Sequence record: LC680884.1
Direction: 5' to 3' (one strand)
DNA: 64,000 bases
Part shown: in pieces, positions 9,846 to 57,691 of the stretch
Layout: each line of letters begins with the position of its first letter
Position numbering within the stretch: position 1 is the stretch's first letter
Translations under genes and position numbers: made by a program
Notes under the pieces: model-generated
What the model was told of the DNA's origin: nothing
The model's database searches: none
What the model saw: the letters and a program-made list of their open reading frames with translations, nothing else

Positions 9846-9858
9846 TGCTCCTTTTCTT

Positions 9859-11928: not shown

Positions 11929-11932
11929 AATA

Positions 11933-12133
11933 TCACTTTCCTTTTTTATCTAATAGTTCTTCTAAATTAGTATCCTCTTTTAATAAATCATTCCCTAATC
12001 CAGCACCCATTAGATATACATACATGGTATTAAGAGTTTGATTTTCAGTAATATCATGACCTAAATCTTTTAGATAAGTATATCCATATAAATTAATATT
12101 TTTATACATATCTGTCTTTGCTACAGAGTTATC
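11933..12133 (-). CDS. second RNAP beta-C subunit (probable virion RNAP), exon 3
   Basis: DNSVAKTDMYKNINLYG aligns with bacterial beta SDDxxGRxKxYxxIxxG; preceded by intron terminal G at 12134. Confidence 0.85.
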   Translation of the reverse strand, partial: DNSVAKTDMYKNINLYGYTYLKDLGHDITENQTLNTMYVYLMGAGLGNDLLKEDTNLEELLDKKGK

Positions 12134-33707: not shown

Positions 33708-33724
33708 TTAATGAATAAACCTCC

Positions 33725-34417
33725 TTACTGTGGTTTTATTAAATACTCTATATCTAACCACATCTGTCTACTATTACCACTATTATTATGAAGAATAAAT
33801 TTTATAGAAGTATTAGCAGGTACTTTTAGTCCTTTATTAAATTTCTTTTTTTGGGCAACTTCTTTTGTAGAGATATTACTAAATATAATATCTTCACCAA
33901 CCATTAAATCATAGGTATCTTCATATTTCCAACCTATTTGGGACATAGAAATTGCTGTTAGTTCAATATCCCTATTCTGTATAAACTCTAATATAAAATC
34001 CTCTCTTATAGGAGGAACATATTCATAAAAACCTTTAATTCTTTGTTCTCCTTGGGGACTTAGCTTATCAGCTATACCAGATACTGTATCTTTAATACTT
34101 TTTGTAACATCTAACTGAGATTTTAATTTAGTTTCAATTTGATTTATTATTTCTTTATTTTCTTCACTTGTTGTAATAATGAAGTTAGATATATTTTCAA
34201 TATCGGATGATAAATTAGAAATAGTCTGATTAATAACATCATTTATATCAACTATCGAGCTTAATTTGCCTTCAACTACTGAAGTATTTAATATAGCTTC
34301 AGTGACTTTATCCATATTAACGTCACTTATGGATAAAGATAATCTAGCATCTCTAATAGCCTCCTGAATATATTTTGCAGAGTCATTATAGTTTATTATA
34401 TAAGAAGGAAGCCCCAT
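33725..34417 (-). CDS. paralog triplet B, member 2
   Basis: MGLPSYIIN; GEQR.KG; SQ..W...D.YDL; NNSGNSR..W.DI. Confidence 0.75.
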   Translation of the reverse strand: MGLPSYIINYNDSAKYIQEAIRDARLSLSISDVNMDKVTEAILNTSVVEGKLSSIVDINDVINQTISNLSSDIENISNFIITTSEENKEIINQIETKLKSQLDVTKSIKDTVSGIADKLSPQGEQRIKGFYEYVPPIREDFILEFIQNRDIELTAISMSQIGWKYEDTYDLMVGEDIIFSNISTKEVAQKKKFNKGLKVPANTSIKFILHNNSGNSRQMWLDIEYLIKPQ

Positions 34418-34433
34418 TTAAGTTACCTCCTAA

Positions 34434-35135
34434 TCAAACTGTAGGTTTATCAATTTCAATATAGTCAATATCAAACCATACATACTTACTATTGGCACTA
34501 CTAGTATTATCAAATTGAAATGTTATTGGTGTATTAGCTGGTACTGGAAAGAATTTCTTTAATTCTTTATGTTCTCCACGATTTTTAGTATAAATTCTAT
34601 CAAACATAATAAAATCACCAATTTTTAGAGACCATTTATCATTGTTATTCCATGCTGATTGAGAGATAGTTATCCCAGTTAAAATAGTATCTTTATCACT
34701 AGTAAAAACTTTTGTGTAACTACCAGCTACACTTGGAACTGCAAGTGAGTATCCAATGGCTCTTTGATTTCCTTCAGTTGCCAATTGTTTCTTAATTTCT
34801 TCCAATATATTAAACATACTTGTAGTTGTACTTAATATATTGTCAAGTTTAGTTCCTAATTGATCCATTGAATTTTTAAGATTATTATCATGAGCAATTA
34901 AACTATTAAGAATATTTTTACTAGCATCCTGAACTAATTTAATATTACTATCAACAGTTCCTAATTTAGATAGAATATCATCTAAAGATTTTTCAATTTC
35001 AGTTGTATCAATTGTAATAGAGGAAGAATCTAAAGTTACATCACCAACTGATACTGAAATTGCTGCTTCATTAATAGCCCTAATAATTGGATCCTTAATC
35101 TCTTCAAAGTTTATAATTAGACTTGGTAAACCCAA
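34434..35135 (-). CDS. paralog triplet B, member 1
   Basis: MGLPSLIIN; GNQR.IG; SQ..W..NDKWSL; NTS..NSK..W.DI. Confidence 0.75.
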   Translation of the reverse strand: MGLPSLIINFEEIKDPIIRAINEAAISVSVGDVTLDSSSITIDTTEIEKSLDDILSKLGTVDSNIKLVQDASKNILNSLIAHDNNLKNSMDQLGTKLDNILSTTTSMFNILEEIKKQLATEGNQRAIGYSLAVPSVAGSYTKVFTSDKDTILTGITISQSAWNNNDKWSLKIGDFIMFDRIYTKNRGEHKELKKFFPVPANTPITFQFDNTSSANSKYVWFDIDYIEIDKPTV

Positions 35136-40112: not shown

Positions 40113-42227
40113 TTAAATAGCGGTTGCTCCCAAAATAATCTCATCTTTATTTAATTTCTTAATAGTGTTACCAAATGCTGGACGGAGTAATACACTTACT
40201 TCATCAATGTCCATTCCAATAATACTAGTATTACTAATAATGGTTAAATCAGAATCTGGTTTAACAGAAACAATTCTCACAATTTCATCATTTTCTTTTG
40301 CTCTAATTCCAATTCGACCTTTACCACCACGGATTTGTTCAGGGAACTCAGAGATTTCAACTCGTTTTCCCAATCCTTTTTTACTGATAAAGAAAGCATG
40401 TGATACTTCTTCTGTTACTAGATCAATACCAGCAATATAATCTCCTTTATTGATAATAGAATTGTCAAAAATGTTAGAACCAAATGTAGGGCGAAGAACT
40501 ACTGGGATAGAGTCAAGTGACATATTAATTGTTGCTCCTGTATTAGTGCAAGCAATAATAGAATTCTTTCCTTTCATATCTACTTTTTGAGCAAAGATAA
40601 CACTATCACCATCATTTAATTTAGTTGCAATAATACCAGATTGATAAATATTCTTAAATTCTGCTACATCTACTAGTTTAATTTTATTCAATCTAGTACC
40701 AATTGCAATTTTGATATTTTCATTATTCATCTCATCATCTGTCATTGCAAGGACATTTGTTAGAGTTTCATCTTTAATAATACCATTTAGATTATAGCCA
40801 TATGATTGGATTTCACAACCTTCAATCTCATAAGCTTTTCTTGAATAAACTTTTCCTGCATTTGTAAAAATAAGAATATTATCCTTATTATTTGCATTAA
40901 AAATAGTAATTGGATTATCATCAGATTTAATCTTACCAATACTATTTCCTTTACCACCACGTTTTTGAACTTTGATAGTATTATTTAATTTCTTAATATA
41001 ACGATTAGTACAAATGAAAGTATGGTTGCTGTCAATAATAAGATTTTCTTTATTATTAATATCTTCTATATTTAAATCTAGAACAGTTGTTTTTCGTTCA
41101 CAACCAAACTTTTTCTTAGCATTTTCAAGTTCAGAGATAATATACTCATTAATCTTATTATCATCTTTAAAGTATAATACCGTATCGTTATATTTCTTTT
41201 CTAAGTCTTTTCTTTCTTTTTTCAATTGATCAATTTCAATATTGTTAATACGATATAATTTCATATTTACAATATATTCAGCTTGATCTTCTTCAATTTT
41301 AAATTCTTTTACAATAGTTTCAACCATTTGTGATCTACTTTTACTAGTTCTGATAATATCTAACAAACGATCTAGATTAGTACCTAACGCAGTAAGTAAC
41401 CCATCAATAATATGAATTCTCTTCTTAGCATCTTTAAGATCATTTGTAAATAAACGTCTAAGAGTAACAATACGGAAATTTAACCATTCTGCAACAATTT
41501 GGTTGACGTTAGTAAAGTTAATAAACTTCTTGTCTATTACTCCATTAAAGTCCATTGGTAGGGTAAATTGACAATTAGTATATTTATATAATTGGTTTTC
41601 AATTAAATCTAGATCATAACCTTTCTTTACTTCAATAATAATATTAATTTTACCTTTTTCTGAAAGGTTCTTAATATTTTTAATTCCTTCAATCTTCTTA
41701 GGAATTTTATTACCTTTCTCAATTCTATCATTAGCTACATTTTGAATAGATTCAATTAGTTTATCAGATGTTTTTAGATATGGGATCTCGCTAATAACTA
41801 ATTCATGTTTCTTTTCATTTTTGGTAATTCTTGCTCTAATAATAGCTTTTGATTTACCAGTAGTATATGCTTCTTCTACTTGCCTTTTATTAATAATTAC
41901 TCCACCAGTTGGGTAATCTGGTAGTAACTTGATCTGATAATTATTATCTTTAATATACTTAATAGTCTCATCAATAACTTCATTAATATTATGTGGATGT
42001 TGGTTGGTTGCATAACCAGCAGCAATACCGAGACTACCATTAACTAATATCATTGGAAGAATAGAAGGTAATACTTTTGGCTCTTCTAAAGTATTATCAA
42101 AGTTTGGAACAAAATCAACAATGTTTTTATTAATATTTGAAAGTAAAACCTCTTCTGCAAATTTATGGATTCTAGCTTCACTATAACGTTCAGCGGCGGC
42201 TGGATCCCCATACACACTTCCAAAGTT
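40113..42227 (-). CDS. gyrA: DNA gyrase subunit A, exon 3
   Basis: Starts NFGSVYGDPAAAERYSEAR (catalytic Tyr); GIAAGYATN..PH, PDYPTGG; CTD with GyrA-box QKRGGKG. Confidence 0.93.
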   Translation of the reverse strand, partial: NFGSVYGDPAAAERYSEARIHKFAEEVLLSNINKNIVDFVPNFDNTLEEPKVLPSILPMILVNGSLGIAAGYATNQHPHNINEVIDETIKYIKDNNYQIKLLPDYPTGGVIINKRQVEEAYTTGKSKAIIRARITKNEKKHELVISEIPYLKTSDKLIESIQNVANDRIEKGNKIPKKIEGIKNIKNLSEKGKINIIIEVKKGYDLDLIENQLYKYTNCQFTLPMDFNGVIDKKFINFTNVNQIVAEWLNFRIVTLRRLFTNDLKDAKKRIHIIDGLLTALGTNLDRLLDIIRTSKSRSQMVETIVKEFKIEEDQAEYIVNMKLYRINNIEIDQLKKERKDLEKKYNDTVLYFKDDNKINEYIISELENAKKKFGCERKTTVLDLNIEDINNKENLIIDSNHTFICTNRYIKKLNNTIKVQKRGGKGNSIGKIKSDDNPITIFNANNKDNILIFTNAGKVYSRKAYEIEGCEIQSYGYNLNGIIKDETLTNVLAMTDDEMNNENIKIAIGTRLNKIKLVDVAEFKNIYQSGIIATKLNDGDSVIFAQKVDMKGKNSIIACTNTGATINMSLDSIPVVLRPTFGSNIFDNSIINKGDYIAGIDLVTEEVSHAFFISKKGLGKRVEISEFPEQIRGGKGRIGIRAKENDEIVRIVSVKPDSDLTIISNTSIIGMDIDEVSVLLRPAFGNTIKKLNKDEIILGATAI

Positions 42228-42585
42228 CTAATAGTTATTAACCATAGGCTTTTTATCCTATGCTCTGGAGGTTTCCCTCATTTTCATCGATTGGTCATTT
42301 CCAATCCAGTATAGCATATCTTTTTATCCATGTATTTCACAATAGATGGATACTGGGGTCTCTTGGATACATTATATTCTTCATCTTGTGAAGTTTCAGC
42401 AATCTATGCGTTGCGCCTGAATGGACTATTACATCCATCCTTCGGACTCTGATCAGGATAGGCTATACCCTTCCAGCTTAATCCCCCAGTAATAATGATG
42501 TATGTTACCATACAAAACGGCATATCCTTTAACGAGCCTAATCTATTATATGACGGTATTCATATAATATTAAAGGATTTTACTT
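42228..42585 (-). mobile_element. ORF-less group I intron B in gyrA (358 nt)
   Basis: Exon ends GGT, intron ends ...TATTAG; P3 GGGG/CCCC, P AAGCTGG, Q ATCAGAG, R CAACGCATAG, S AAGATATGC. Confidence 0.88.
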
Positions 42586-42681
42586 ACCATGAGCATCAAT
42601 AAGGCTTTTATTGACATACCAAGGTTGATACATTTTTACTAGTGCTTCATATACGCTTGCATTTCCGTGGGGATGATATTC
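42586..42681 (-). CDS. gyrA: DNA gyrase subunit A, exon 2 (96 nt; not in ORF track)
   Basis: EYHPHGNASVYEALVKMYQPWYVNKSLIDAHG corresponds to YHPHGD..VY..LVRMAQ...LVDG.G. Confidence 0.93.
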
Positions 42682-43035
42682 CTGTTAGTTATTAACCATA
42701 GGCTTTTTATCCTATGCTCTGGAGGTTTCCCTCATTTTCATCAGTTGGTCATTTCCAACTCAGCATAGCATATCTTTTTAACCATGTATTTCACAATAGA
42801 CGGTTAATGGGGTCTCGTGGATACATTATATTCTTCATCTTGTGAAGTTTCAGTAATCTATGCGTTGCGCCTGAATAAATTATTACATTTATCCTTCGGA
42901 CTCTGATCAGGATAACTAAACCCTCCCAGCTTAATCCCCCATTAATAATCTTAAATGTTACCACTTAAGACGGCAAGAATTTCATTGCTAAGTTATATAC
43001 TCTATCATAATTGATAGGCAATGAAACTACTGTTT
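42682..43035 (-). mobile_element. ORF-less group I intron A in gyrA (354 nt)
   Basis: Exon ends GGT, intron ends ...TAACAG; same core as intron B; 57-bp exact shared block (42686-42742 = 42232-42288). Confidence 0.88.
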
Positions 43036-43254
43036 ACCAATAATGCTCCCCGTAATTTTTGCTGACTTAACATGCGGTTTATTTGATTCCCATTTATGTA
43101 CATGCATACCCCATAGAATTCTACGGTGAATAGGTTTTAATCCATCACGAGGATCTGGAATAGCACGTTCCTTTAAAACCTCATCATAATATTCTGTAGC
43201 ATTTTCAGTTTGAATAGTTTCATAATCTTTCTTAATAATTGCCATTTTCATCAT
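43036..43254 (-). CDS. gyrA: DNA gyrase subunit A, exon 1 (spliced product about 806-809 aa)
   Basis: RAIPDPRDGLKPIHRRIL..KSAKITGSIIG. Confidence 0.93.
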
Positions 43255-43392: not shown

Positions 43393-43839
43393 TTAAATCT
43401 CCTCCAATCCTGATAGTTTATAATTTGTATATACTTTCATCCTTTCTGAGTTATATGATAATAATATAACTTTATTTTTTAAATTATTCATAAGTTCTAA
43501 TCTATATTTATCATATTCATCTTTGATCAATATTTTAGTATTAGGAACAGTATAAAAAGGATGAGTACATGCTAACATTCTATCATAGAAATCCTCTGTA
43601 TATTTTATTTTATTATTCTTAATAGGTGGAATAATTTTTGATAATCTAAATTTATCATTGGTTTTATAGATAAACTCAATATACTCTTCTGCTAGAATTA
43701 CTTCATACAGAATTATTAAGTCAGTGACTTGATGATTATATTTAATACTCTTTGGTATTTTTGAATCAAATTTCATAACATCTTCAAAATCCCAATTAAT
43801 TAAATGCCTTAATCTATCTAATGTATTATTGTACTTCAT
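43393..43839 (-). CDS. paralog triplet C, N-domain-only member
   Basis: HLINW ... NKV.L...KVYTNY shared with the next two genes. Confidence 0.7.
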   Translation of the reverse strand: MKYNNTLDRLRHLINWDFEDVMKFDSKIPKSIKYNHQVTDLIILYEVILAEEYIEFIYKTNDKFRLSKIIPPIKNNKIKYTEDFYDRMLACTHPFYTVPNTKILIKDEYDKYRLELMNNLKNKVILLSYNSERMKVYTNYKLSGLEEI

Positions 43840-44728
43840 TATTTACTCCCTTCTTCTTAACCCATCCTTTACCATTGCATTTTTCACAGAATTCTTTTTC
43901 TATATAATAATTTCTTTCGTAACCTTTTCCATTACACTCCTTACATTTACATATTTCTGATCGTTTAACAATATTTTCAACTATTTTATCATTAAACTTT
44001 CTTTTACATTGATCACAATAGTATAAATCTTTATCCAGTGGATCCGTATTATGAAATATAGTGAATATTGGCGATGCGATATTTTCTTTCGCTTCTTTAT
44101 CTTGTTTCGTATAAAGATCAGTTTTTAAAATATCTTCATTACAGCAATGGCATTTTAATTTATTATTTTCCTTAATTAAATCTTCTAAACTATGATATTC
44201 TTTAAATTCAACTTGTATTGAGTGTTTAGTGCATAAATTGTGTCTATTGAATCTAGTTAATGAGTTTCTTGAACCACAGATCTCGCATATATTCTCTTCG
44301 AGAAAATCCTTAATCTTCACTCTTTCTCGCCTAATATCTAGGAATTCTTTTTCAGATATTTCGTAATTAGCATATACTTTTAACTTTTTAGAATCTCTTA
44401 AAATAGCTACTTTGTTATTTTTATTTTGTAGATATTTATTCCTATAATCTAAATATTCATCTCTTTTTAGACAATTAACATACTTATAATAATAAGTAAT
44501 AGTTCTTTCTTGTATTTCTTTTTTTAATTCATTAGAAAGATAAGGTTTCCCATATTTAATTCCGACAGGTATTTTAAATGTAATAAAATTATTTTTTCGT
44601 TTATAAACTAATTCTACATAACCATCAGTAAAAATAATTTCATAAGTTTTATCGAAATGAGGAAGACATGAATCCTCAAATCTAATCATTCCTGCTAATG
44701 ACCATTCAATTAAATGTAAATCCCTCAT
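43826..44728 (-). CDS. paralog triplet C, multi-Zn-finger protein with DnaJ-type CxxCxGxG repeats
   Basis: CEIC..CTKH, CHCC..CDQC, CKECNGKG..CEKCNGKG. Confidence 0.75.
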   Translation of the reverse strand: MRDLHLIEWSLAGMIRFEDSCLPHFDKTYEIIFTDGYVELVYKRKNNFITFKIPVGIKYGKPYLSNELKKEIQERTITYYYKYVNCLKRDEYLDYRNKYLQNKNNKVAILRDSKKLKVYANYEISEKEFLDIRRERVKIKDFLEENICEICGSRNSLTRFNRHNLCTKHSIQVEFKEYHSLEDLIKENNKLKCHCCNEDILKTDLYTKQDKEAKENIASPIFTIFHNTDPLDKDLYYCDQCKRKFNDKIVENIVKRSEICKCKECNGKGYERNYYIEKEFCEKCNGKGWVKKKGVNNEVQ

Positions 44729-45639
44729 TTACTGTTCTCCTTCTTAATCCAACCTGTTCCTTGACAATAAGCACAATCTACTTTATAGAGTTTGTAATCC
44801 CTAATATATCCTTGTCCACGACAGTTTTCACATCTATGTCCATGCTGATTTAATAAATTTTTTTCTATATAGCCATGAATGACGCAATTATTGCATACTT
44901 TTGTATCATCATATAATAAATAAAATTGATCAGTGTATATAGATGTGAATAAACTTCCTTTACATACATCACAGGTAGGTTTAGATCCAAGATTAATTTT
45001 ATTTTTTCCATTATATGATAAAATTTGGTTATTTATTATACTTTTATTCCTATATAATTCTTTAACTCTATGATCATCACAATAATAATAACTTTTACCT
45101 ATACCGAATCTATTTTTATCAGATATATTATTAGATCTTTTACCACACACATCACATAATTTTTTAGATTCATAAAAATCATGATTAGAAATTAGATGTT
45201 TTTTAGCACGATCTATTTCTTCATCAGAAATGTGATTTGTCTGTAACACAATATTAGATGTATCTATAACAACTGTAACTTCATTATTCCCATTATTTAA
45301 AAGTATTTCTTTATATTTATTATATTCATCTTGAGTTTTTAAATTATAACTATTCATAAAATTATTTACTATCATATCCATTGCATCTTTACTAAACTTG
45401 GCTTCTCTATCAGATAAAAGAGGGAGACTGTTTTTGGATATATTATATGTATCATTAGTTAATTTTTGTACTACTTGGATTCCAGATTCAGTATAAATTG
45501 TTTCAATGTGTACTTTCTGATTATTTACTCTATTTGATAGTATATCTAATATTTTATCATGTGTTTTAAGAACTGTATGGATATCCCATTTAATTAGGTG
45601 TATATTTTTAAAAGATTTTGTCATTAGCATAATTATCAC
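44725..45639 (-). CDS. paralog triplet C, multi-Zn-finger protein with DnaJ-type CxxCxGxG repeats
   Basis: CDVC..CDDH, CDVC..CNNC, CENCRGQG..CAYCQGTG. Confidence 0.75.
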   Translation of the reverse strand: MIIMLMTKSFKNIHLIKWDIHTVLKTHDKILDILSNRVNNQKVHIETIYTESGIQVVQKLTNDTYNISKNSLPLLSDREAKFSKDAMDMIVNNFMNSYNLKTQDEYNKYKEILLNNGNNEVTVVIDTSNIVLQTNHISDEEIDRAKKHLISNHDFYESKKLCDVCGKRSNNISDKNRFGIGKSYYYCDDHRVKELYRNKSIINNQILSYNGKNKINLGSKPTCDVCKGSLFTSIYTDQFYLLYDDTKVCNNCVIHGYIEKNLLNQHGHRCENCRGQGYIRDYKLYKVDCAYCQGTGWIKKENSK

Positions 45640-47424: not shown

Positions 47425-48570
47425 TTATAGGGATTCTAATATATCAACAGCTGAATGTTCTTTAACACGCTTTAAGCTTTCTTCAAAGATAGGATTATTC
47501 TCATAATCAGACTTAAACAAATCATAACCAACATATTCTTTTATTTCGTCTTTAGATAAAGCTTTTTCAATATTGTTAAGAAATTCAGAATGTTTAGTTG
47601 CCATTGGATTTTCCTTGAAACTATTCTCAAAGAATTCAATTAATACAAGCATTGTTCTAAAAATATACTCTCTGTATTTTCCTTCAAAATACTCTGAATG
47701 GAGTGGTTCAAGCTCACTTCTTAATAAAGGATGTTTACTATTTCTATTAATTGATAGGCTTCTTTTAATATTCTTAAATACTAATTCTTCTCCTTTCATA
47801 ATTTTAACAAGATTAATATACTTATTATTTTTTGGATTAGGATCAATTAATGTGATATCATTTTTAGTTTTTAATAACGTTTTTACATCATCAATTAATT
47901 CATTAAAATACTTATCAACTTTATTTTTATCCTCAATATACTTGTCTTCATAATACTCACTAAAATTTCTTAATATTGCAATACTACCAATTGTTCCTAA
48001 GAAATCTTTTACCAATGGGGCTAGAAGAATATTTACCTCTTTATTATTAATCTTATCATTAGTTTCAATATTTTCTTTTTTCATTTCTTCATTCTCCTTT
48101 TCATATTTTTCATAATTTCTCGAAAAGTAATATGGTAAATTATATTCTATATATGCTCTCATAATCTTTCCAATATCTTCTCCCGAATCTTGGAGTCTCT
48201 TTGTTAGGTTATTAAATTTTCTATCTGAGAAAAAACCAGATTTAAGATTTACTAAACTTAAATATTCAATAGTATTTTCTTTATTAACTAATGTTATATG
48301 TAGCTGATTATCATTATTAAAAGGATATTCGACTGTAGTTATCTCCCAATAAAATTGAATATTTGTGTTAAGTACAGCAATTTTATCATAGCCTATTGCT
48401 TTCATTCGTTTTATAATTGTATCAAGATGATTCTTTTGAGCTGGTACAATTTCTTGCCTTAATATTTTATCAAAACCAGATTCTCTCTTTCTTGGGAATA
48501 AACCAGATTTACTACCACTTGGAACCTCTATTACTTCAATCACATTTTCCATTAAATTAAATTCAGACAT
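47425..48570 (-). CDS. paralog array D, member (381 aa)
   Basis: DKYFNEL..D, YFEGKYRE..F, Y.GY, YENNP.F..SLKR, ends VDILESL. Confidence 0.8.
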   Translation of the reverse strand: MSEFNLMENVIEVIEVPSGSKSGLFPRKRESGFDKILRQEIVPAQKNHLDTIIKRMKAIGYDKIAVLNTNIQFYWEITTVEYPFNNDNQLHITLVNKENTIEYLSLVNLKSGFFSDRKFNNLTKRLQDSGEDIGKIMRAYIEYNLPYYFSRNYEKYEKENEEMKKENIETNDKINNKEVNILLAPLVKDFLGTIGSIAILRNFSEYYEDKYIEDKNKVDKYFNELIDDVKTLLKTKNDITLIDPNPKNNKYINLVKIMKGEELVFKNIKRSLSINRNSKHPLLRSELEPLHSEYFEGKYREYIFRTMLVLIEFFENSFKENPMATKHSEFLNNIEKALSKDEIKEYVGYDLFKSDYENNPIFEESLKRVKEHSAVDILESL

Positions 48571-48584
48571 TTAAAATCCCCCAG

Positions 48585-49835
48585 TTATAGATTCTCTAAT
48601 AATTCAATAGCTTCTAAGTCTTTTATCCTCTTAAAACTATCTTTAAATTTTGGATTATCTTCATATAAATGCTTATAGTGTTCATAACCAAGATAATTTT
48701 GGACTTCTTTAAGTGATAATATTTTTTCAGCTCTAGCTAAATCATTTTGATTGCAATGTTTTTCAAAATATTCTATCATTAATAATAGCGCTTTAAATTG
48801 TGATTCTCTCAATTTTGCACTAAAATATTGAGAACCTTTTAAGGTTTTATATTTTGATAATGGATGTTTGTTCCTAGAAGTTACTTTATATTTTGATTTT
48901 ATTCTTTTAATAATTGTAACTTGTCTTATATCTTTAATATCAATTAGCTGAAAATATACACTTGCTGTAGATTTAGTTTTAATTTCAATATTAGATATTA
49001 TCGGTAATCTTGTTTTTGCATCTTGTAATAGTTCATCAAAATATTTATCTATATTATCAAAATTTTCAAGCTCTCTATCATTATTTAAAAGAACATAGTC
49101 TTTCATTAATGCAATACCAAATTGATTATTAACAATATCTTTAATAAAAGGCATATAGTATAAGTCAAGATCTAATCTATTCAATTTAGAATCTAGCTCC
49201 AAATCATGAGAGCAGATATTAAATAATGTATATGGTGGTTTAAAAGCTTTAGCAGGTCTTGCATTAATTACATATTCCCTAGTATAACTATTCCTAAGAA
49301 TTCTATCACTTAACACTCTAGTTGAAATGTGTAAATACTCAGATATGTCTTTAAATACTTCTCTAGCATTTAAAGAATTATCAATACCAGGTAATTTATG
49401 CATTTTATTATATTGACTTTGCATCCACCTAAATAATTCAAGATTTCTTTCCTTTGATGTATTATTACCTAAAAATACTTCATAACCTTCATCCATCAAT
49501 TTATTTATTAATTCACTTATAATGAGTACTTTAATTATTGTATTAATTTCAGGTGGATTTGTCCAACCCCAATGTTTCTGATATACCATGAGATTAGGTT
49601 CAACAATTATTTTATTATTATTATTATCAATTCTTATTCCACGGGCAGTAAGACTATATTTAAATAAATATTCACTTTTATTAGATTCATTTAATATATA
49701 ATTATAATAATCTAATAATTTTCTATCTAAAATATATTTAGCACTATCTTCACTCAAATAAAGTTGATTATTTCTAATGTTAATTTTATACTGTTTTAAT
49801 CTTTCTTCAATTTTAATCATATTTATCCCCCTCAA
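48585..49835 (-). CDS. paralog array D, member (416 aa)
   Basis: LNRLDLDLYYMPF, DKYFDEL, YFSAKLRE, YEDNPKFKDSFKR, ends IELLENL. Confidence 0.8.
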   Translation of the reverse strand: MRGINMIKIEERLKQYKINIRNNQLYLSEDSAKYILDRKLLDYYNYILNESNKSEYLFKYSLTARGIRIDNNNNKIIVEPNLMVYQKHWGWTNPPEINTIIKVLIISELINKLMDEGYEVFLGNNTSKERNLELFRWMQSQYNKMHKLPGIDNSLNAREVFKDISEYLHISTRVLSDRILRNSYTREYVINARPAKAFKPPYTLFNICSHDLELDSKLNRLDLDLYYMPFIKDIVNNQFGIALMKDYVLLNNDRELENFDNIDKYFDELLQDAKTRLPIISNIEIKTKSTASVYFQLIDIKDIRQVTIIKRIKSKYKVTSRNKHPLSKYKTLKGSQYFSAKLRESQFKALLLMIEYFEKHCNQNDLARAEKILSLKEVQNYLGYEHYKHLYEDNPKFKDSFKRIKDLEAIELLENL

Positions 49836-51064
49836 ATAGAATCTAATATTCTTAATGCTTCATATTGTCTAACTCTTTTTAAACTATTTTTGAATTGTGG
49901 ATTATTAAGATATAATTCTGGATAAACATTATAACCAATATAATTTTGTATTTCATTAGTAGCTAATGTCTTTTCCATTTTCTCTAAAAATGAGTTTTGA
50001 TTTAAAGTTTCAAAATGTTTTATTAAGATTGTAATAACTTTAAATAAAGATTCCCTCAGTTTACTATCAAAATAATCAATACCATAAACGCCTTTTTTAT
50101 TTCTTTTTTTGTTTAAAGGATGTTGATTAGAGGGAGAAAAATTTAATTTTGTTTTAATAAAATTAGCTTCATAAGTAAGACTAAATGCTATATTATAATA
50201 TGGACCACGACTACGAGTTGACAAATTCTCAAATAATTTTGATGGATCTGATTCTAATCTTTTTAAAAAATCATTTACTAACTCATCAAAATACTTATCA
50301 ATCTTATCTTTAGATTCAAATTTTTGATCCTTATTTAAAATAATATAATCTAATAATAAACCTGAAATATTAGAATTTCCAAAGTTAACATTAGTGAATG
50401 GAACATAAAAAAGATTTAAATCAGGACGATATAAATTTATTTTTTCATTATTTATATCGCTAAAATATCTATAAACTGGATTTGAAATAAATCTATTATT
50501 AGTACAATAATCTAGGTTATAACATCTTTTAACAACTTTAGATCTAATTATAGATACACGCATGTCAATATAGTATTCTAGTGTTGCGTCATCATTATCA
50601 TTAAATAAATCATTACTTTGATACTTAATGATATTATTTAAATTTTCTTCAATTAGATTCTCACTCATACAATATGAGTTTAAGACATAATTACGAAATA
50701 AATTATTACCAAATGACAAAGGAAAATTATAGTCTAATAATTTTTCTGTTACAGAGAGAAATATAAGAATCTCCATATATTCTAAATTAGAATATTCTGT
50801 TTGTATAGATAATTTTTCAATATCTATTATTATTATTTTATTATCAATTAACTTAAATAAGTGTAGCTTAAATATATGTTGCCCTGAATCAGTTTGATAA
50901 AGAGTGAAAGGAGTATTTAATCTCTCTATAATAAGTCTTTCATGATATGGGATAAGTTTTTCTTCTGCATCCTTAGTCATATATAAATTATAACTATTTT
51001 TTGAAGAAGTTTCATCCTTTTTTAATACAATTCCTAATTTTTCTAATTCTTTTTTTATATCCAT
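49832..51064 (-). CDS. paralog array D, member (410 aa)
   Basis: LYRPDLNLFYVPF, DKYFDEL, YFDSKLRE, YLNNPQFKNSLKR, ends LRILDSI. Confidence 0.8.
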   Translation of the reverse strand: MDIKKELEKLGIVLKKDETSSKNSYNLYMTKDAEEKLIPYHERLIIERLNTPFTLYQTDSGQHIFKLHLFKLIDNKIIIIDIEKLSIQTEYSNLEYMEILIFLSVTEKLLDYNFPLSFGNNLFRNYVLNSYCMSENLIEENLNNIIKYQSNDLFNDNDDATLEYYIDMRVSIIRSKVVKRCYNLDYCTNNRFISNPVYRYFSDINNEKINLYRPDLNLFYVPFTNVNFGNSNISGLLLDYIILNKDQKFESKDKIDKYFDELVNDFLKRLESDPSKLFENLSTRSRGPYYNIAFSLTYEANFIKTKLNFSPSNQHPLNKKRNKKGVYGIDYFDSKLRESLFKVITILIKHFETLNQNSFLEKMEKTLATNEIQNYIGYNVYPELYLNNPQFKNSLKRVRQYEALRILDSI

Positions 51065-51356
51065 TTCTCATCCTCCATATTTATAATGATTCCATTATAT
51101 TAATTGCCTCATATTCTTTAATTTTCTTCATACTTCTAGAAAACTCATTACTATTAATTATATCTTTGACCTCTTTAGATTCATCAAAAATAAATATTCC
51201 TTGTGAATCAAAGTCAAAACCTAATTCAATTAATTTTTGAGTATCTGTCATAAATAGTCCGCCTAGTATTATTTCTCAAATTATTTAGTATCAAAAGTAT
51301 AATATATATTTTTAAATTTTTTTAAACATAATAATATAGCTAGAAGGGGTGGTAAT

Positions 51357-51803
51357 ATGGGTAAAATAATCGCAGAACATATTGATAGAACTACATTAAA
51401 AGAAAGTGTTTTAATTCCTGAACATGAAGAAAGAAAAGAATCATCTACGTTTAGAAAATCTAAAAAAAGATTAAAAGAAGATGGTCATTATAAGTGTTGG
51501 ATATGTGAAAACACTGAACATTTAGAAGTTCATCATTTCCTATGTAGTTGGTCTATGCAAAATGTCTGTGACTATGATAAATTAAAAGAACTCGTAGAGT
51601 TGTTTGATATTTACGGATATGGAAAAAAATTAAATGAAGTACCTATTACAACTGTAGATGATATTAGAAATTTAATTGTATTATGTTTAAAACATCATAG
51701 ACAAACTTTTACTGGTATTCATGAACTTACTTTTCCTACTTGGATATTACAAAAAGTGACTAAGACTGACAGAGAAGTAGTTATTGACGAAGATGCAGTA
51801 TAA
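51357..51803 (+). CDS. HNH-type nuclease-like protein, opposite orientation inside array D
   Basis: CWIC...LEVHH ... NLIVLCLKHH...GIH; late motif at 51325. Confidence 0.7.
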   Translation: MGKIIAEHIDRTTLKESVLIPEHEERKESSTFRKSKKRLKEDGHYKCWICENTEHLEVHHFLCSWSMQNVCDYDKLKELVELFDIYGYGKKLNEVPITTVDDIRNLIVLCLKHHRQTFTGIHELTFPTWILQKVTKTDREVVIDEDAV

Positions 51804-51810
51804 AAATTAT

Positions 51811-51844
51811 TAGAATGATATCCTATAAAAAGGATATCATTCTA
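51811..51844. terminator. bidirectional terminator
   Basis: TAGAATGATATCCT/AGGATATCATTCTA between convergent genes. Confidence 0.75.
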
Positions 51845-51846
51845 AA

Positions 51847-53010
51847 TTAAAGTTGTTCTAAGAGTTCTTCTGCTTCATATCTAGATATTCTTTCTCTGCT
51901 TTTAGCAAATTTATCATCATTCAAATAACTTATTCGAATATCATCATATTCATAATAACCAATATAATTCTTAAATATTTTTAAAGAAAATGCTTTTTCA
52001 ATTGATTCTAATTGTTTCTCCAAATTTTCTTTTTCAAAATATTCAATCATAAAGAGTATTATTTTAAAAATTGTTTCCCTAAATTTTCCCTCAAAATAAT
52101 TCTCTTTTTTCCCAAAGAATCTTGCTCTAGAAGTTGATAATTGTTTATTTATTTTATTTTTTCTAGTTTTAGTAACTTTTCCTCTAATTAATTGAATCAA
52201 ATGAATATAAAATGAATTTAGATTATGTTTATATACTCTTTGTTCTTTAACAACCGTTAATCTCTTTTTAGTGTCTTCTAGAATATCATTAAAATATTCA
52301 TTAATTAATTCTTCTTTTTCTAATTTTGGATCATTAAATAATAATCTATAATCTTGCATTAAAGTTATAGATGCTGAGTTTGTCTTAAAATCCTTAATTA
52401 AAGGAAAATAAAGAATATCTAAATCCGGTCTAGTTAAGTTTAACTTAGATTCATGTATTGTGGGTTTACTAAATACTGATTGATCAGCCGATCTATAACC
52501 ATCATCTATAGGTGATTTATCAAGAGATCTCTTGATAAATTCATGATCATAAATATAACTTGCTAACTCATATTCAACACTATTAATAACACTACCCATT
52601 GTTAATAATGTTGAATAATCTTCATCATCTGGAAATACTCTTAATCCTGATTTTAATAAGATCATTTGATCTAATTTATCTGAAATGATATCTAAAGTAA
52701 TATGATCACTATCTATTAATCTCTTAACAATACTACTAACAACATAATTAGCAAATTCAGTATGATTAAAATGAAAATAACTATTAATTGCTTGATTTTT
52801 CTTATAAGACCAAACATTAAATATTATGAATGATGCATCAAAGTATACAGTATCATTTTCTACAAAAAGAAATTTTCTTTCTTTATTTATATCATTTAGC
52901 ATACTAACTATACATTCATTGCTAACTAGATCATTATCCTCCATTATAATTATATTATTATCTTCATCAACGTCTAATAATAATTCCTTTAAAGATTCAA
53001 TAATACTCAA
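51847..53010 (-). CDS. paralog array D, member (387 aa)
   Basis: LTRPDLDILYFPL, YFEGKFRE, YIGY, KF.KS.ERI, ends EELLEQL. Confidence 0.8.
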   Translation of the reverse strand: MSIIESLKELLLDVDEDNNIIIMEDNDLVSNECIVSMLNDINKERKFLFVENDTVYFDASFIIFNVWSYKKNQAINSYFHFNHTEFANYVVSSIVKRLIDSDHITLDIISDKLDQMILLKSGLRVFPDDEDYSTLLTMGSVINSVEYELASYIYDHEFIKRSLDKSPIDDGYRSADQSVFSKPTIHESKLNLTRPDLDILYFPLIKDFKTNSASITLMQDYRLLFNDPKLEKEELINEYFNDILEDTKKRLTVVKEQRVYKHNLNSFYIHLIQLIRGKVTKTRKNKINKQLSTSRARFFGKKENYFEGKFRETIFKIILFMIEYFEKENLEKQLESIEKAFSLKIFKNYIGYYEYDDIRISYLNDDKFAKSRERISRYEAEELLEQL

Positions 53011-53022
53011 TATAATAACCTC

Positions 53023-53157
53023 CTACAATGATTCTAATTTATCAATTGCATTATATTCTATTATTCTTCTTTCACTTTCTTCATTCTGCCAGTCTAATTT
53101 TCCTTTAAAGTGTAAATAATTCTTAAATTCATCATTTGCTAAGAATTTTTCAATCAT
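53023..53157 (-). CDS. 44-aa mini-member of array D (C-terminal tag only), not in ORF track
   Basis: MIEKFLANDEFKNYLHFKGKLDWQNEESERRIIEYNAIDKLESL; AAGGAG RBS. Confidence 0.65.
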   Translation of the reverse strand: MIEKFLANDEFKNYLHFKGKLDWQNEESERRIIEYNAIDKLESL

Positions 53158-53174
53158 ATTAGCTTTTCTCCTTA

Positions 53175-53371
53175 TTATAAAGAATCAATTAAAGATATTG
53201 CTCTATACTCTTTTATTCGTTCTATACTGTCTTTATGATCTTTTTCATAATACTCACTAAAAATATCATAAATTGAGTTTTATTAATATCTATATGATAT
53301 CTATTATTTCTTAAAATTAAATGTACGTTCTTATATGATTTTTGATAGTACTCTTTAAAATCCTTTATCAA
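53175..53371 (-). pseudogene. frameshifted mini-member of array D
   Basis: GGAGG then TTG start at 53371; one extra A near 53280 would give ...INKNSIYDIFSEYYEKDHKDSIERIKEYRAISLIDSL. Confidence 0.55.
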
Positions 53372-53383
53372 AAAAATTACCTC

Positions 53384-54082
53384 CTATAATTTATTTAATA
53401 TATTCATAGCTTCATAATTTTTTACTCTTTTTAGACTATTTTTAAACTTAGGATCATTTTCGTATAAATACCAATTTTCTTCATAGTTAATATAAGTTCT
53501 TAAATTTTCTAATAGAAAATATCTTTCTACTGATTCGAGATATGTAAATAACTTATTATTCTCTAAATACTCAATCATATATAGAATTGCTTTAAACATT
53601 AATTTTCTAAAATTCTCTTTAAATAGATCTGTAGAGTAATAAATAGCATTCTCCCTAGCAAAAGCATAACAATAAGTTAAACTATTAAATGTATTTTTAC
53701 AATCATCACTGTATTCAGTCAATAAATAACTCAATCTAAAGTTTCCATAATCTCTATATGAATTAAAACCACCTTCTAATTCTTCAATGAATTTAGGAAA
53801 TTTTCTTTTAAATGTTTCTAATAAACTTTCAAAGTATCCTTCTAGTAGTTCTTCTTCTGAATAGATGTCATTAAGTCTTCGATAAGAATCACCTATTTCT
53901 ATTTTTTTATAATTATCTTGATCAATTAGAGTTATTATATTACAATATTCAGAATAAAGTGATCTAACAGCTAAATGTCCGTGGTGTATATCAAAATTCT
54001 TAACAAAAGGAAAATCAATAATATTTGTATTCTTTTTTAATATATTTTTATCCATCCAGTTAATTTTTATTTCCTTACTCAT
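53384..54082 (-). CDS. paralog array D, core-domain-only member (232 aa)
   Basis: FPFVK.F, YFESL, FRKLMF, YENDPKFKNSLKR, ends MNILNKL. Confidence 0.8.
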   Translation of the reverse strand: MSKEIKINWMDKNILKKNTNIIDFPFVKNFDIHHGHLAVRSLYSEYCNIITLIDQDNYKKIEIGDSYRRLNDIYSEEELLEGYFESLLETFKRKFPKFIEELEGGFNSYRDYGNFRLSYLLTEYSDDCKNTFNSLTYCYAFARENAIYYSTDLFKENFRKLMFKAILYMIEYLENNKLFTYLESVERYFLLENLRTYINYEENWYLYENDPKFKNSLKRVKNYEAMNILNKL

Positions 54083-54181
54083 TTTTATCCTCCTTATAAT
54101 GCAAAACCACTACTAAGCTCTTTTAAAAAAGGATAAGTGATAATAGTGTCATTATCACTTACCATTCCATTAGTTAGCCAA

Positions 54182-55597
54182 TTATTCATTCTTATCCTCC
54201 TTATAATTATTACGTCTTACTTTACCATATGGTTTTCGAACGGATAAGTTATTTCCTCTTGTAATAATCCATAACATTTGACAATTTGGTTTTTCTAGTA
54301 ATTCATATTCACCAAAGCCATCAGTAAAGACTACTAGTACATCTGTTTTTGGTAAATTCTTATTTACATAGCTAATAACAGGTGAAAATTCTGTACCACC
54401 ATTTTTGTCTCTTTTAAATTTAATATCATTCTTTTTTCTAACATCATAGACAGTTCCAACCTCTGAATCAAAATGAATGATAGTAACAGTTGATTTCTTC
54501 CCTTTTAATAAACCAATTACTTCATTAAGTGACCATGCTAATTCCTCATTTGACATTGATCCTGACATATCTAATGCAACTGCAACCTTACATTCTCTGT
54601 CCGAGATCCTTCCTAGAACATCAGGTCTATCAGGTTGTCTTCTACTTCTACGCATAGGAGTTCTCTTAAATGGAACTTTTAAACCACCAATCATATTCTT
54701 AAAAATTTTCTGCCATGCAATTTCTTGCTTACCTAATAATGATTGTAAGATACCTTCCATATTATTAGGAAGATTACCTCTATTTCTATTTTTAATATCT
54801 TGAAGAATATCTTTTAATTTCTCTGACATCTCTTTCTCTACTGTTTTACTAGATTCAATTTCATCCCATTTATCATGAGCATGATTTCTTGATTGTGATA
54901 ATCTTTTTTCTTTACCACTTTCGGTTAGATTTCCATCAGAATCAACATCATTATCATTTAATTCATTAGGATCTTTTGAACTTTGACCATTAGATTTATT
55001 ATTTTTATTGGCTTTCTTACTCTTTAATAATAATTCTAGATAATATTCAAAATTTGCCTTAGATCTAATATTCTTTACTCCGGTCATTTCTTTAACTGAT
55101 TTAAGTGTAATTGCACCATTAGGTAAATTTTTAATAAACTGATTAATTGCACAATCCATTGCAATATTAACTTTTTGCATGTCAAGTTTATTATATTTAG
55201 TGGATAAAACTTTGTGTCTATAGATATGGCTATTTGCAACATGAAGTAATTCATGCATTAGTACAGCAACGATCTCATCTTGTTCAAATAAGAATAATTT
55301 ATATGGATTTAATAATAACACGAATGTCATTCTATTATCATCATAATATACTGCGGCAGGAGCAAAATACTGATCGTGAATAATAGTTCTTTTAACAGAA
55401 GACAAAAAATAAGCATAGAATCTACTATCTCCATCCCGATCATTTAAGATCAGGGAAGTAGTTAATAGAGAGAAATATCTCTCTATTAACTTTTGATTAT
55501 TTTCTGAGACTTGAACTGAAGGAGCATCTGCTTTAATATATACTGATTTTAGATACTCATAAATTTCATTTTTATTATCACTATTAAGAATAGACAT
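54182..55597 (-). CDS. metallopeptidase-vWA protein (DUF2201-like)
   Basis: VLMHELLH, NIAMDCAIN; polar linker; VALDMSGSM, GGTEF, VFTDG. Confidence 0.88.
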   Translation of the reverse strand: MSILNSDNKNEIYEYLKSVYIKADAPSVQVSENNQKLIERYFSLLTTSLILNDRDGDSRFYAYFLSSVKRTIIHDQYFAPAAVYYDDNRMTFVLLLNPYKLFLFEQDEIVAVLMHELLHVANSHIYRHKVLSTKYNKLDMQKVNIAMDCAINQFIKNLPNGAITLKSVKEMTGVKNIRSKANFEYYLELLLKSKKANKNNKSNGQSSKDPNELNDNDVDSDGNLTESGKEKRLSQSRNHAHDKWDEIESSKTVEKEMSEKLKDILQDIKNRNRGNLPNNMEGILQSLLGKQEIAWQKIFKNMIGGLKVPFKRTPMRRSRRQPDRPDVLGRISDRECKVAVALDMSGSMSNEELAWSLNEVIGLLKGKKSTVTIIHFDSEVGTVYDVRKKNDIKFKRDKNGGTEFSPVISYVNKNLPKTDVLVVFTDGFGEYELLEKPNCQMLWIITRGNNLSVRKPYGKVRRNNYKEDKNE

Positions 55598-55622: not shown

Positions 55623-56852
55623 TTATTTTAAATTTTGAATGATATTAACAAACTTTTGAATAAAAGTTTGATTAGTTTTTAAAATTTCAAAAATAGAACT
55701 AATGTTATCATTAGGATTTCTCTTAATCTCACTAATTGCCATCATTAGCAGTTCTTCAGGAATAATATCAAGATAAGTAATAAAGTTATTTAACTCTTTT
55801 TCTTTAAATTTATCGATATTATTACCAATATGAATATATACATAGCGAGTTAATAGATTTTGTCTTGCCATAGTTTCATTTTTAATTTTTTCGATTAGCT
55901 TTGTATCTTTAGATAAATCTTTATTATTAATAATAGTCTTTGGATTAATCATTGGTTTAGAATTTTCTTCAATAAAGCTTCTAAATGCAATAGCAGTATT
56001 TTTCCCAAGATTTCCTTCTACTACTCCCCAGAAAGCTCTTTTATTATCACTGTCTTCCATATCATAATTCTCTTCAAAATATCTATACGCATCAGAAGTT
56101 CTTTCCCAAGCACGAGGAGTTGGATTTTTACCTTCATTTTCAGCATTAATGATATGTAACTGAAGAGGATCATTTGTGATAAATTCAATAATATTCTTGT
56201 GGATCATAGAATCTGTCTTAATTAGATTGTCATCATTATCATAAAATGATACTTGTTGTAATGCCCATTTAATCCATTCATCAGAGTCTACTTCTAAATG
56301 AAGATCAGTAAAACGATCTCTTAAAGCATAGTTCATAGTATTTACTTGATAGTCAATTCCATCATCATCTTCAGAATCTGGATTTCCTGCCGCAATCATA
56401 ATAGTATTTTCTGGTAATGGATTTCCATTAATTTGCTTCGTAAGAATTAATTGCATTAACTCTTGTTGTACTGCAATATCAGAACGGTTTAATTCATCTA
56501 AGAATAATAGTGGGATTTTACCTGCCTCATTTGCTTCCCATAGTTTTCTAATTGCAGTATGAATAGTATATGTTGTTACATTTAATTCTTCTCCGCTATA
56601 GTTTTTAGTGACATTAATTGGCATACCAGTTAATTCACCTTCTTTAAGGACAGAACCAAATAACTCAACATATACTACATCTTTATTTTCTCTTTCTTGA
56701 ATTAAATCTGCATAGATTTTTGCAATACTTGATTTTCCAATACCACTGTGACCCATAACCATAGGCACTGAACCTGATTGAACTGTAATATCGATTGCTT
56801 TGATTAGATTTGACATTTTCATAATAATTTCTCTCTCCATTTCTATTCCCAA
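55623..56852 (-). CDS. MoxR-like AAA+ ATPase
   Basis: GHSGIGKS, LFLDELNR, AAGNP, ALRDRF, TPRAWE. Confidence 0.88.
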   Translation of the reverse strand: MGIEMEREIIMKMSNLIKAIDITVQSGSVPMVMGHSGIGKSSIAKIYADLIQERENKDVVYVELFGSVLKEGELTGMPINVTKNYSGEELNVTTYTIHTAIRKLWEANEAGKIPLLFLDELNRSDIAVQQELMQLILTKQINGNPLPENTIMIAAGNPDSEDDDGIDYQVNTMNYALRDRFTDLHLEVDSDEWIKWALQQVSFYDNDDNLIKTDSMIHKNIIEFITNDPLQLHIINAENEGKNPTPRAWERTSDAYRYFEENYDMEDSDNKRAFWGVVEGNLGKNTAIAFRSFIEENSKPMINPKTIINNKDLSKDTKLIEKIKNETMARQNLLTRYVYIHIGNNIDKFKEKELNNFITYLDIIPEELLMMAISEIKRNPNDNISSIFEILKTNQTFIQKFVNIIQNLK

Positions 56853-56896
56853 TTATTTATCTAGTTTATTACATTTTTATAATATAAACTTTAAAG

Positions 56897-57691
56897 TTAT
56901 TTTAATTTCTTCTTATTATATTCTAATTTATATTTAATAATTAAATTCCTTATATATGTTTTTGTAATTCCTAATGGTTCAGCTAATTGAGCTTGAGTCC
57001 AGTCAGGATGCTCTTTAATTAATTCTCTTAATTTTTCAACCATATATTCTTCTCTAATTTCTTTTTGATTGATGTTATTTCTTACTAGTATAGAATTAAT
57101 TGTATTTGGAAGAGCTAGGAAATGATCAGCTATTTGTTTTTGTGTCCAGTCAGGATGTTCTTTAATTACATCCAATAAATCATCTTTAGTTATAGTTTTT
57201 AATTTATAATTTAGATTATATTCATTAATTAATCTTTTTACTAATAGATCAGCTATTTCTTTTTGATTTAATTTATTATTATTCTTAATTACTGAAAATA
57301 ATAAATCTGCCATAATTTCTTCATTCATAAAATATTGTGAAATTAAATTTTTTTCCATAAATTTATTCCTGCTTTGATTTCCTTTTTTAACATATATTAT
57401 ATCATACTTTTTTATTAACCTACCGATATAGGATTCTACAACTCCTAAATGATCAGCTATTTGTTTTTGTGTCCAATCAGGGTGTTCATTAATAATTTCA
57501 ATTAATTTTTCTTTTGAAATAATTATTTTTTTATTCTTCTTTTTTATAGTATAATCAATATTATATTTTTTTATTAATTGTCCAATATAAGATATAGATA
57601 AATTTAAATGATCAGCTATTTGTTTTTGCGACCAATCAGGATTTTCTTTAATTATTTTTTCTAATATTTCTTTATTAATCTTTTTACCCAT
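56897..57691 (-). CDS. tandem helix-turn-helix repeat protein (5 units)
   Basis: IxEHPDWTQKQIADHL repeats; 23-bp DNA repeat AAATGATCAGCTATTTGTTTTTG at 57120, 57447, 57606. Confidence 0.8.
   Translation of the reverse strand: MGKKINKEILEKIIKENPDWSQKQIADHLNLSISYIGQLIKKYNIDYTIKKKNKKIIISKEKLIEIINEHPDWTQKQIADHLGVVESYIGRLIKKYDIIYVKKGNQSRNKFMEKNLISQYFMNEEIMADLLFSVIKNNNKLNQKEIADLLVKRLINEYNLNYKLKTITKDDLLDVIKEHPDWTQKQIADHFLALPNTINSILVRNNINQKEIREEYMVEKLRELIKEHPDWTQAQLAEPLGITKTYIRNLIIKYKLEYNKKKLK

Follow-up and report, generated by a model that had tools for sequence, protein, structure and literature searches.

A genus-specific array of early paralogous genes in Bacillus phage PBS1: domain plan, deletion remnants, and candidate roles

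A tandem paralog array and its domain plan

We analyzed a stretch of 64,000 nucleotides from sequence record LC680884.1 (the window, by which the whole stretch is meant), in which a tandem array of paralogous genes occupies positions 47,425–54,082. The array region showed 100% identity to genes 215–223 of Bacillus phage PBS1 (MF360957.1) and 96–97% identity to the phages AR9, vB_BsuM-Goe21 (Goe21; 96% at the nucleotide level), and vB_BspM_Internexus (Internexus), all of which belong to the genus Takahashivirus. PBS1 and AR9 are classic jumbo phages of Bacillus subtilis with uracil DNA and two multisubunit RNA polymerases, and they have been used in generalised transduction; to our knowledge, almost nothing is known of their early host takeover. 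Every paralog gene lies on the minus strand (table 1). A preliminary description of this DNA had reported five long open reading frames (ORFs) of 381, 416, 410, 387, and 232 aa, the second of which has 411 aa from its annotated start, and had placed the array directly downstream of, and co-oriented with, helix-turn-helix (HTH)-repeat, MoxR-like, and metallopeptidase-vWA genes. Both statements were confirmed, the latter by Pfam matches.

The five long ORFs are related over a C-terminal core. Pairwise blastp comparisons among them gave E values of 5e-10 to 2e-38, and the PHROG profiles 13583, 31241, and 38865 cross-matched all five. The core is all-helical and about 210 aa long; the earlier claim of a core shared by all five, given there as about 230 aa, was confirmed. 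An alignment of six cores contained 17 invariant columns, mostly aromatic or aliphatic and with no catalytic-looking motif. A hidden Markov model (HMM) of the core matched the intact members at E values of 1e-71 to 2e-84 (5e-75 for the core of g223) and matched the short remnants described below at 7e-6 to 3e-4. The isoelectric point (pI) of the core ranged from 4.9 to 9.3 among members. A membrane or secreted protein was ruled out, as no member had a convincing hydrophobic or transmembrane segment.

Upstream of the core, positions 1–406 of phrog_13583 were covered by g218, g221, and g222, which thus have its full-length two-domain architecture, and this match over the full length indicates that their N-terminal halves are homologous. 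The same profile spans Goe21_00360, Goe21_00370, and gp079 and gp091 of the B. pumilus phage BpSp almost end to end; a shallow HMM built on the common N-domain did not detect Goe21_00360, 00370, and 00400, the first two of which the PHROG profile does cover. The architecture was not found in g223, which has another N-domain, or in g215, which consists of the core only. The preliminary description had considered all N-terminal extensions unrelated; this failed for g218, g221, and g222 and held for g223, and g215 has no extension at all. A typical member is therefore a soluble two-domain protein of about 400 aa, with an N-terminal alpha/beta part and a helical C-terminal domain. Core-only members are g215 and its counterpart Goe21_00350, together with AR9 g030 and Goe21_00340; g215 showed 94% identity to Goe21_00350 and 41% to AR9 g030.

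The divergent N-domain of g223 matched the Pfam family PF25749 (SPO1_gp41) over profile positions 1–140 of 140 (E 4e-77; 257.5 bits against a cut-off of 27), and tblastn aligned it with gene 41 of phage SPO1 at 37.6% identity (E 1e-18). A four-sequence alignment of this gp41-type domain contained 43 invariant columns. When the gp41-type domain was compared with the common N-domain by hhalign, the probability was 0.1%, and the two were accordingly treated as unrelated. In SPO1, the gp41 gene is located within the host-takeover module, beside the gp38–40 "host shutoff" genes, and gp41 expressed alone reduces the growth of B. subtilis by at least 50% (PMC6873191).

Relatives of the family were sought with the core profile and with structural models, two lines of work that the preliminary description had suggested. 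When the profile was run exhaustively against 1.84 billion representative proteins, 10 matches were returned, all of which mapped to genes of PBS1, AR9, Goe21, Internexus, or BpSp, or to an 87%-identical relative of Goe21_00400. By tblastn against 50,697 phage records, the family was found in eight; IMG/VR returned only AR9, and word-indexed searches with g215 and g222 yielded one partial copy and otherwise only proteins of PBS1 and AR9. These results demonstrated that the family is confined to the genus Takahashivirus (PBS1/AR9 phages). A partial 168-aa protein deposited as B. subtilis, encoded on a 1,394-bp contig, was 98.6% identical to Goe21_00350 and probably stems from phage DNA that entered a bacterial assembly.

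For the core and the common N-domain, scans of the five members with Pfam, NCBIfam, and PADLOC yielded no match, and none to anti-phage defence or toxin families was found in any member; the core profile found nothing below E 0.24 among PDB sequences. AlphaFold models were obtained for g215 and g222, both with a mean predicted local distance difference test (pLDDT) score of 61. In Foldseek searches against the PDB, the best E values were 2.3 for the core model and 2.0 for the full-length g222 model, and against BFVD the core model retrieved only the family's own members; because of the mean pLDDT of both models, the absence of fold matches is weak evidence. Our literature search found nothing on the family. 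Thus, the earlier statement that no named family could be recognised holds as to function, the core being represented only by unnamed PHROGs (13583, 31241, 38865, and 32923).

Table 1.— The paralog array, its neighbouring genes, and predicted signals in the window
Feature	Position	Strand	Description
g223	47425–48570	-	381 aa, intact; SPO1 gp41-like N-domain (~48151–48564) fused to family core (~47428–48075)
g222	48585–49835	-	416 aa (411 aa from annotated start 49820), intact, two-domain; phrog_13583 4e-185
g221	49832–51064	-	410 aa, intact, two-domain; phrog_13583 full length, 1e-157
g220	51081–51251	-	56-aa mini-ORF; in-frame remnant of Goe21_00400 ortholog, one internal deletion; corresponds to phrog_32923
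AR9-type early promoter motif	51299–51311	-	Predicted start of transcription unit 2
g219	51357–51803	+	Free-standing HNH endonuclease inside the array; phrog_8048 3e-47
Terminator-like hairpin	51810–51845	-	Predicted to close transcription unit 1; 15-pair stem, then T-run
g218	51847–53010	-	387 aa, intact, two-domain; phrog_13583 full length, 1e-145
g217	53023–53157	-	44-aa mini-ORF; in-frame remnant of Goe21_00370/Internexus_209 ortholog, one internal deletion
Goe21_00360-ortholog remnant	53175–53371	-	One internal deletion plus frame change; g216 at 53222–53371, tail at 53175–53279
g215	53384–54082	-	232 aa, intact, core domain only; phrog_38865 1e-128
Goe21_00340/AR9 g030-ortholog remnant	54083–54181	-	One large internal deletion; contains hairpin 54132–54163
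g214	54182–55597	-	Zincin-like metallopeptidase fused to vWA domain; DUF2201_N 58.6 bits, DUF2201 60.6 bits
g213	55623–56852 (annotated start 56822)	-	AAA+ ATPase, MoxR-like by Pfam AAA_5 (30.1 bits, cut-off 22); phrog_1297 9e-78
AR9-type early promoter motif	56879–56891	-	Upstream of AAA ATPase gene; predicted start of transcription unit 1
HTH-repeat gene	56897–57691		Co-oriented with and upstream of the array
Promoter 13-mers	18863, 21748, 26991, 39167, 46414, 51299, 56879, 61362	seven -	All matches in the window

The short elements, the shared tail, and the copy number of the array

The array also contains short elements, two of which had been described as mini-ORFs that keep only the last helix of the family. 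Comparison with Goe21 pointed to a different origin. At the same place, Goe21 carries nine intact members (00340–00380 and 00400–00430), and PBS1 carries five intact members plus four genes that have each been cut down by one large internal deletion. For each PBS1 remnant, the DNA matched only the two ends of its Goe21 gene, with 87–96% identity by blastn, and the 99 bp that separate the vWA gene from g215 matched both ends of Goe21_00340 in short segments of 81–100% identity. At the protein level, g220 matched the end of Goe21_00400 (76% identity), g217 the C-terminal end of the 407–409-aa proteins Goe21_00370 and Internexus_209 (83%), and g216 the start of Goe21_00360 (79%). Two of the four remnants are in frame (g217 and g220), that of 00360 has changed frame, and that of 00340 is a short noncoding stretch. 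The short elements keep the first few codons of the gene as well as the tail, and g217 still has a Shine-Dalgarno sequence and a start codon; the stretch encoding the ISLIDSL tail has no in-frame start codon and overlaps the annotated g216 in another frame. These alignments show the PBS1 mini-ORFs to be scars, left by internal deletions from genes that Goe21 retains in full. The g220 scar is common to PBS1, AR9, and Internexus, and the Internexus copy carries one extra indel, by which the mini-ORF is broken (frameshifted) in that phage.

A comparison of copy number among the AR9/PBS1 relatives, as proposed in the preliminary description, showed variation from nine intact members in Goe21 to five each in PBS1, AR9, and Internexus, with a different subset lost in each of the latter three. 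In AR9, 00350–00370 are gone as one block whose junction lies in the conserved 3' ends of genes; Internexus has neither 00350 nor 00360, and of 00340 it retains just the start. Orthologs of 00380, 00410, 00420, and 00430 have been retained by each of the four B. subtilis phages. These results demonstrated that members of the family are individually dispensable, as copy number differs among near-identical phages. In the AR9 11500–12300 region compared with Goe21, the last ~240 nt of different paralogs showed 69–80% nucleotide identity, although the proteins are only 25–40% identical overall, which offers a substrate for recombination. We infer that recombination at the conserved gene 3' ends is how the array gains and loses members.

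The preliminary description had listed seven family-type tails and had interpreted the terminal helix as a docking or targeting tag. Eight such tails were found in PBS1, all amphipathic and of the same pattern; the one that had been overlooked is that of g220, ending in INIMESL, and the ISLIDSL tail belongs to the remnant without a start codon. When an HMM of the 28-residue tail was searched against the 3,960 six-frame ORFs (at least 25 aa) of the whole PBS1 genome, as had also been suggested, only the eight array elements matched at E values of 1e-9 or below, and the next-best match had an E value of 0.03. This excluded chance as the source of the shared tail, and among the same ORFs the tail was found on no unrelated protein. 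In an alignment of twelve distinct paralogs, the last 20–25 columns were among the most conserved, as the continuation of a block of some 85 conserved columns; fully hydrophobic positions recur in the tail at every third or fourth residue, so that one face is hydrophobic and conserved, and conserved acidic positions were present as well. In the AlphaFold models, the C-terminal helical bundle was confident, and few elements were modelled with more confidence than the terminal helix, whose pLDDT block means were 83–95 for g215 and 80–93 for g222 and which joins other confident helices without a low-confidence linker. The models, the conserved face, and the tail search suggest that the last helix belongs to the fold, in which it may be buried, and is not a portable tag. 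No selection for minimal tail carriers was evident among the mini elements: as they are scars of genes intact in Goe21, with the start lost in one and g220 frameshifted in Internexus, they do not support a retained docking tag. The tag interpretation therefore lacked support, given these scars, the absence of the tail elsewhere in PBS1, and its contiguity with the helical block.

Expression, selection, and the neighbouring AAA/zincin-vWA cassette

We derived a promoter 13-mer from three early promoters annotated in AR9 and found eight matches in the window, against 0.81 expected; these motifs mark the early transcription units of the 64-kb stretch. They head both transcription units of the array, one directly upstream of the ATPase gene and one directly upstream of g220. 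Transcription unit 1 also holds the AAA ATPase and zincin-vWA genes, and a strong terminator-like hairpin follows g218. Another hairpin (54132–54163) is situated between the vWA gene and g215, and no early promoter motif occurs after it.

Transcript data for AR9 agree with early expression of the family. Both g028 and g033 are preceded by mapped primary early transcription start sites (Lavysh et al., mBio 2017, PMC5312081), and the g033–g038 operon is early (PMC5312081). The genes g028–g031 and g033–g036 had 25–160 fragments per kilobase of transcript per million mapped reads (FPKM) at 5 min and reached their maximum at 20 min with no late rise, compared with near-zero FPKM of late structural genes at 5 min (PMC5312081). 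The AAA/zincin-vWA cassette is early as well, with 88–595 FPKM from 5 to 20 min (PMC5312081), which does not accord with the part in virion assembly that was suggested for such cassettes of other jumbo phages. The HNH gene g219, which occupies the same location in all four B. subtilis phages, has a transcript in AR9 that rises late (14, 40, and 215 FPKM), unlike its neighbours.

Among orthologs from the four B. subtilis phages, the ratio of nonsynonymous to synonymous substitution rates (dN/dS) of intact members was 0.14–0.32 (g223, 0.14; g218, 0.16; g222, 0.20; g221, 0.23), compared with 0.01 for the ATPase and 0.09 for the vWA protein. The intact members are therefore constrained coding genes that are more relaxed than the cassette.

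In the cassette, the AAA ATPase gene is immediately followed, downstream, by the vWA-zincin gene. Walker A and B motifs can be recognised in g213, which had no sequence relative in the PDB at E values of 0.01 or below and no NCBIfam model above cut-off; its MoxR label consequently rests on Pfam AAA_5 and on the gene pairing. In g214, DUF2201_N and DUF2201 were both above cut-off, and the HExxH and DxSxS motifs are present. The same AAA-vWA pair occurs in other jumbo phages (Iyer et al., PMC7824862). Homologs of the vWA-zincin protein were found in 312 phage records of many genera, compared with the eight records that hold the family. The array is adjacent to and co-oriented with the cassette in all five Takahashivirus genomes examined: in BpSp, the array (gp088, gp089 weakly, and gp091) is likewise found behind the AAA and peptidase genes, and one more family member, gp079, is placed next to gyrase B on the upstream side of the cassette; in AR9, the end of the vWA gene is overlapped by g030. 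Beside the cassette of the nearest outgroups, Listeria phage LPJP1 and Staphylococcus phage LY01, there is no member of the family. As this synteny comes from one lineage, the association of array and cassette is a single observation without statistical weight, and the co-occurrence with MoxR/DUF2201 to which the preliminary description had looked amounted to nothing beyond shared ancestry. The vWA-zincin homolog of LPJP1 (8974–10533) was matched in three pieces and is annotated as four short hypothetical proteins; either the gene is broken or the record contains frame errors.

Elsewhere in the window, further tandem paralogs were observed on the minus strand. The genes g244, g245, and g246 (33021–35135) form a trio of about 230 aa each, annotated as hypothetical, with 26–33% identity and E values of 1e-20 to 1e-35; g228 and g229 (43826–45630) are paralogs of about 300 aa with 24% identity (E 1e-18), annotated in AR9 as DnaJ-type Zn-finger. 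The gene for subunit A of gyrase/topoisomerase IV (40113–43254, minus strand) is annotated as the separate pieces g232 and g235 in PBS1 and as one coding sequence of three joined pieces in AR9, which suggests intervening sequences.

Candidate functions and relation to known systems

On balance, the members of the family are probably accessory early host-interaction proteins that act in takeover or counter-defence, with the helical domain as scaffold and the N-terminal parts as the source of specificity. The helical domain would be a common structural scaffold, possibly for self-association or for a single common partner; the specificity that sets each paralog apart would come from its N-terminal part and its variable surfaces; and the conserved gene 3' ends would double as recombination substrates, on which the array grows or shrinks. 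The preliminary description had likewise inferred effectors with a constant core and a variable N-terminus that act on the host, and this outline is supported, indirectly, by the early promoters, the AR9 transcript data, the gp41 domain, and the copy-number variation, but not in the part that concerned the tag. Several observations weigh against the scaffold proposal. The host-interaction role is one that we infer for every member, and the link to gp41 concerns one member of nine; SPO1 gp41 is an early gene, itself without a known mechanism. Neither the core nor the common N-domain was matched in Pfam, NCBIfam, PADLOC, PDB sequences, or Foldseek. The burial of the terminal helix is surmised from models of only moderate quality (mean pLDDT 61 for g215 and g222), and the strongest conservation, which is in the tail, is also expected of a helix that binds a shared partner. 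Finally, two remnants (g217 and g220) are in frame with ribosome-binding sites, and in AR9 no other gene of the operon is transcribed as highly as the g220 remnant; therefore, some mini-protein activity may persist.

Three other explanations share parts of this evidence. The helical domain could itself be the active module, for example an inhibitor or decoy directed against one rapidly varying host factor or defence protein, with the paralogs as specificity variants of an arms race and the N-terminal parts as accessories. Conserved core-only members (g215/Goe21_00350 and AR9 g030/Goe21_00340), a core whose pI spans 4.9–9.3 while its hydrophobic positions are invariant, and the retention of different subsets by different phages are consistent with such a module. 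However, the dN/dS values between orthologs gave no sign of positive selection, the proteins resemble no known anti-defence or defence protein, and the presence of 00380, 00410, 00420, and 00430 orthologs in four of four B. subtilis phages fits fixed roles better than a rapid arms race; we regard an active helical module as unlikely. Alternatively, the members could be clients or adaptors of the AAA (MoxR-like)/zincin-vWA machine, on which the C-terminal helix would dock, for example with acidic residues on the vWA metal site, and the N-domains would bring host targets for remodelling or cleavage. The cassette is adjacent and co-oriented in five of five Takahashivirus genomes, the first array members share an early transcription unit with the ATPase and vWA genes (AR9 g030 even overlapping the vWA end), and these two genes are early too; moreover, the vWA DxSxS and the peptidase HExxH are both kept, the tail is highly conserved with conserved acidic positions, and SPO1 gp53 provides a precedent as a phage adaptor of a host AAA+ protease (PMC6873191). 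Against this stand a synteny that counts once because it reflects one lineage, a vWA-zincin protein in 312 phage records compared with a family in eight, LPJP1 and LY01 without a family member beside the cassette, BpSp gp079 upstream of the cassette beside gyrase B, and the terminator-like hairpin between the vWA gene and g215 in PBS1. In addition, as the mini-ORFs behind the tag idea are deletion scars and the tail is not portable, docking of a tag on the MoxR-vWA pair loses its main support. Thus, we consider a client or adaptor role quite unlikely. A bolder form, in which the members are interchangeable adaptors of an early remodelling or proteolysis machine, the helix docking on the AAA/zincin-vWA proteins and the N-domains (the gp41-like one included) capturing host proteins, is very unlikely; if it were true, the phage would possess a modular, expandable system to remove host factors.

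Two readings are highly improbable, namely that the array is functionless duplicated DNA in slow decay or that, with the AAA-vWA pair, it takes part in virion assembly. In PBS1, four of nine members are by now no more than scars, as decay would predict, but the intact copies are under purifying selection and four are kept in every relative that infects B. subtilis. An assembly role was proposed by Iyer et al. for MoxR-vWA-peptidase pairs in the group 2.2 jumbo phages (PMC7824862); in contrast, transcription of both array and cassette is early rather than late, and six BpSp gene names (gp083, gp084, and gp088–gp091) are absent from the main text of the BpSp virion proteome paper.

Tandem multigene families that are specific to one lineage and lie in the early region are a familiar feature of large phages, and the array is of this kind; it is the family itself that is uncharacterised. 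Such tandem multigene families of large DNA phages and viruses show "genomic accordion" behaviour. The PBS1 family shares with them divergent tandem paralogs in an early or accessory region, copy number that varies among near-identical isolates, and losses via conserved gene ends, but it differs in having no identified host target, phenotype, or selective agent. The design that the preliminary description had envisaged, a tag with a variable body, resembles the T4 internal proteins, in which a short shared capsid-targeting sequence is N-terminal, cleaved, and portable, and whose genes are late and products packaged. In the PBS1 array, by contrast, the shared part is a folded domain of 210 aa, its terminal helix is found on no other PBS1 protein, and the genes are early. 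As for the cassette, AAA+/vWA chaperone pairs of MoxR type include RavA-ViaA, CbbQ-CbbO, NorQ-NorD, and a pair of Acidianus two-tailed virus. PBS1 has the same succession of an AAA_5 ATPase and a vWA protein with an intact metal-site motif, in PBS1 fused to a zincin peptidase; whereas the known pairs serve one dedicated client complex, the PBS1 pair is accompanied by a paralog array. The closest functional comparison is the host-takeover module of SPO1, which likewise consists of early genes of a lytic B. subtilis phage and to which the N-domain of g223 is tied as a true homolog of gp41. The SPO1 genes, however, are small, single-domain, and mutually unrelated, whereas in PBS1 the gp41-like domain is fused to the 210-aa family domain and the other members carry an N-domain unlike gp41. 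The promoters differ as well, those of the PBS1 array being of the AR9 virion-polymerase type, whereas the SPO1 module genes are read by the host sigma-A polymerase, as stated in the SPO1 literature (PMC13401047).

Our analysis defined a nine-member, genus-specific early gene family with a domain plan and with one member tied to SPO1 gp41; the gp41 fusion and the dynamics of the array, reconstructed from five genomes, are the new details. The early expression of the AAA-vWA-zincin cassette in AR9 does not match the assembly role proposed in other jumbo phages. With the unsupported tag account removed, the outcome is a short list of candidate host-interaction genes, whose relevance lies mainly in the biology of PBS1 and AR9, where it is of moderate interest.

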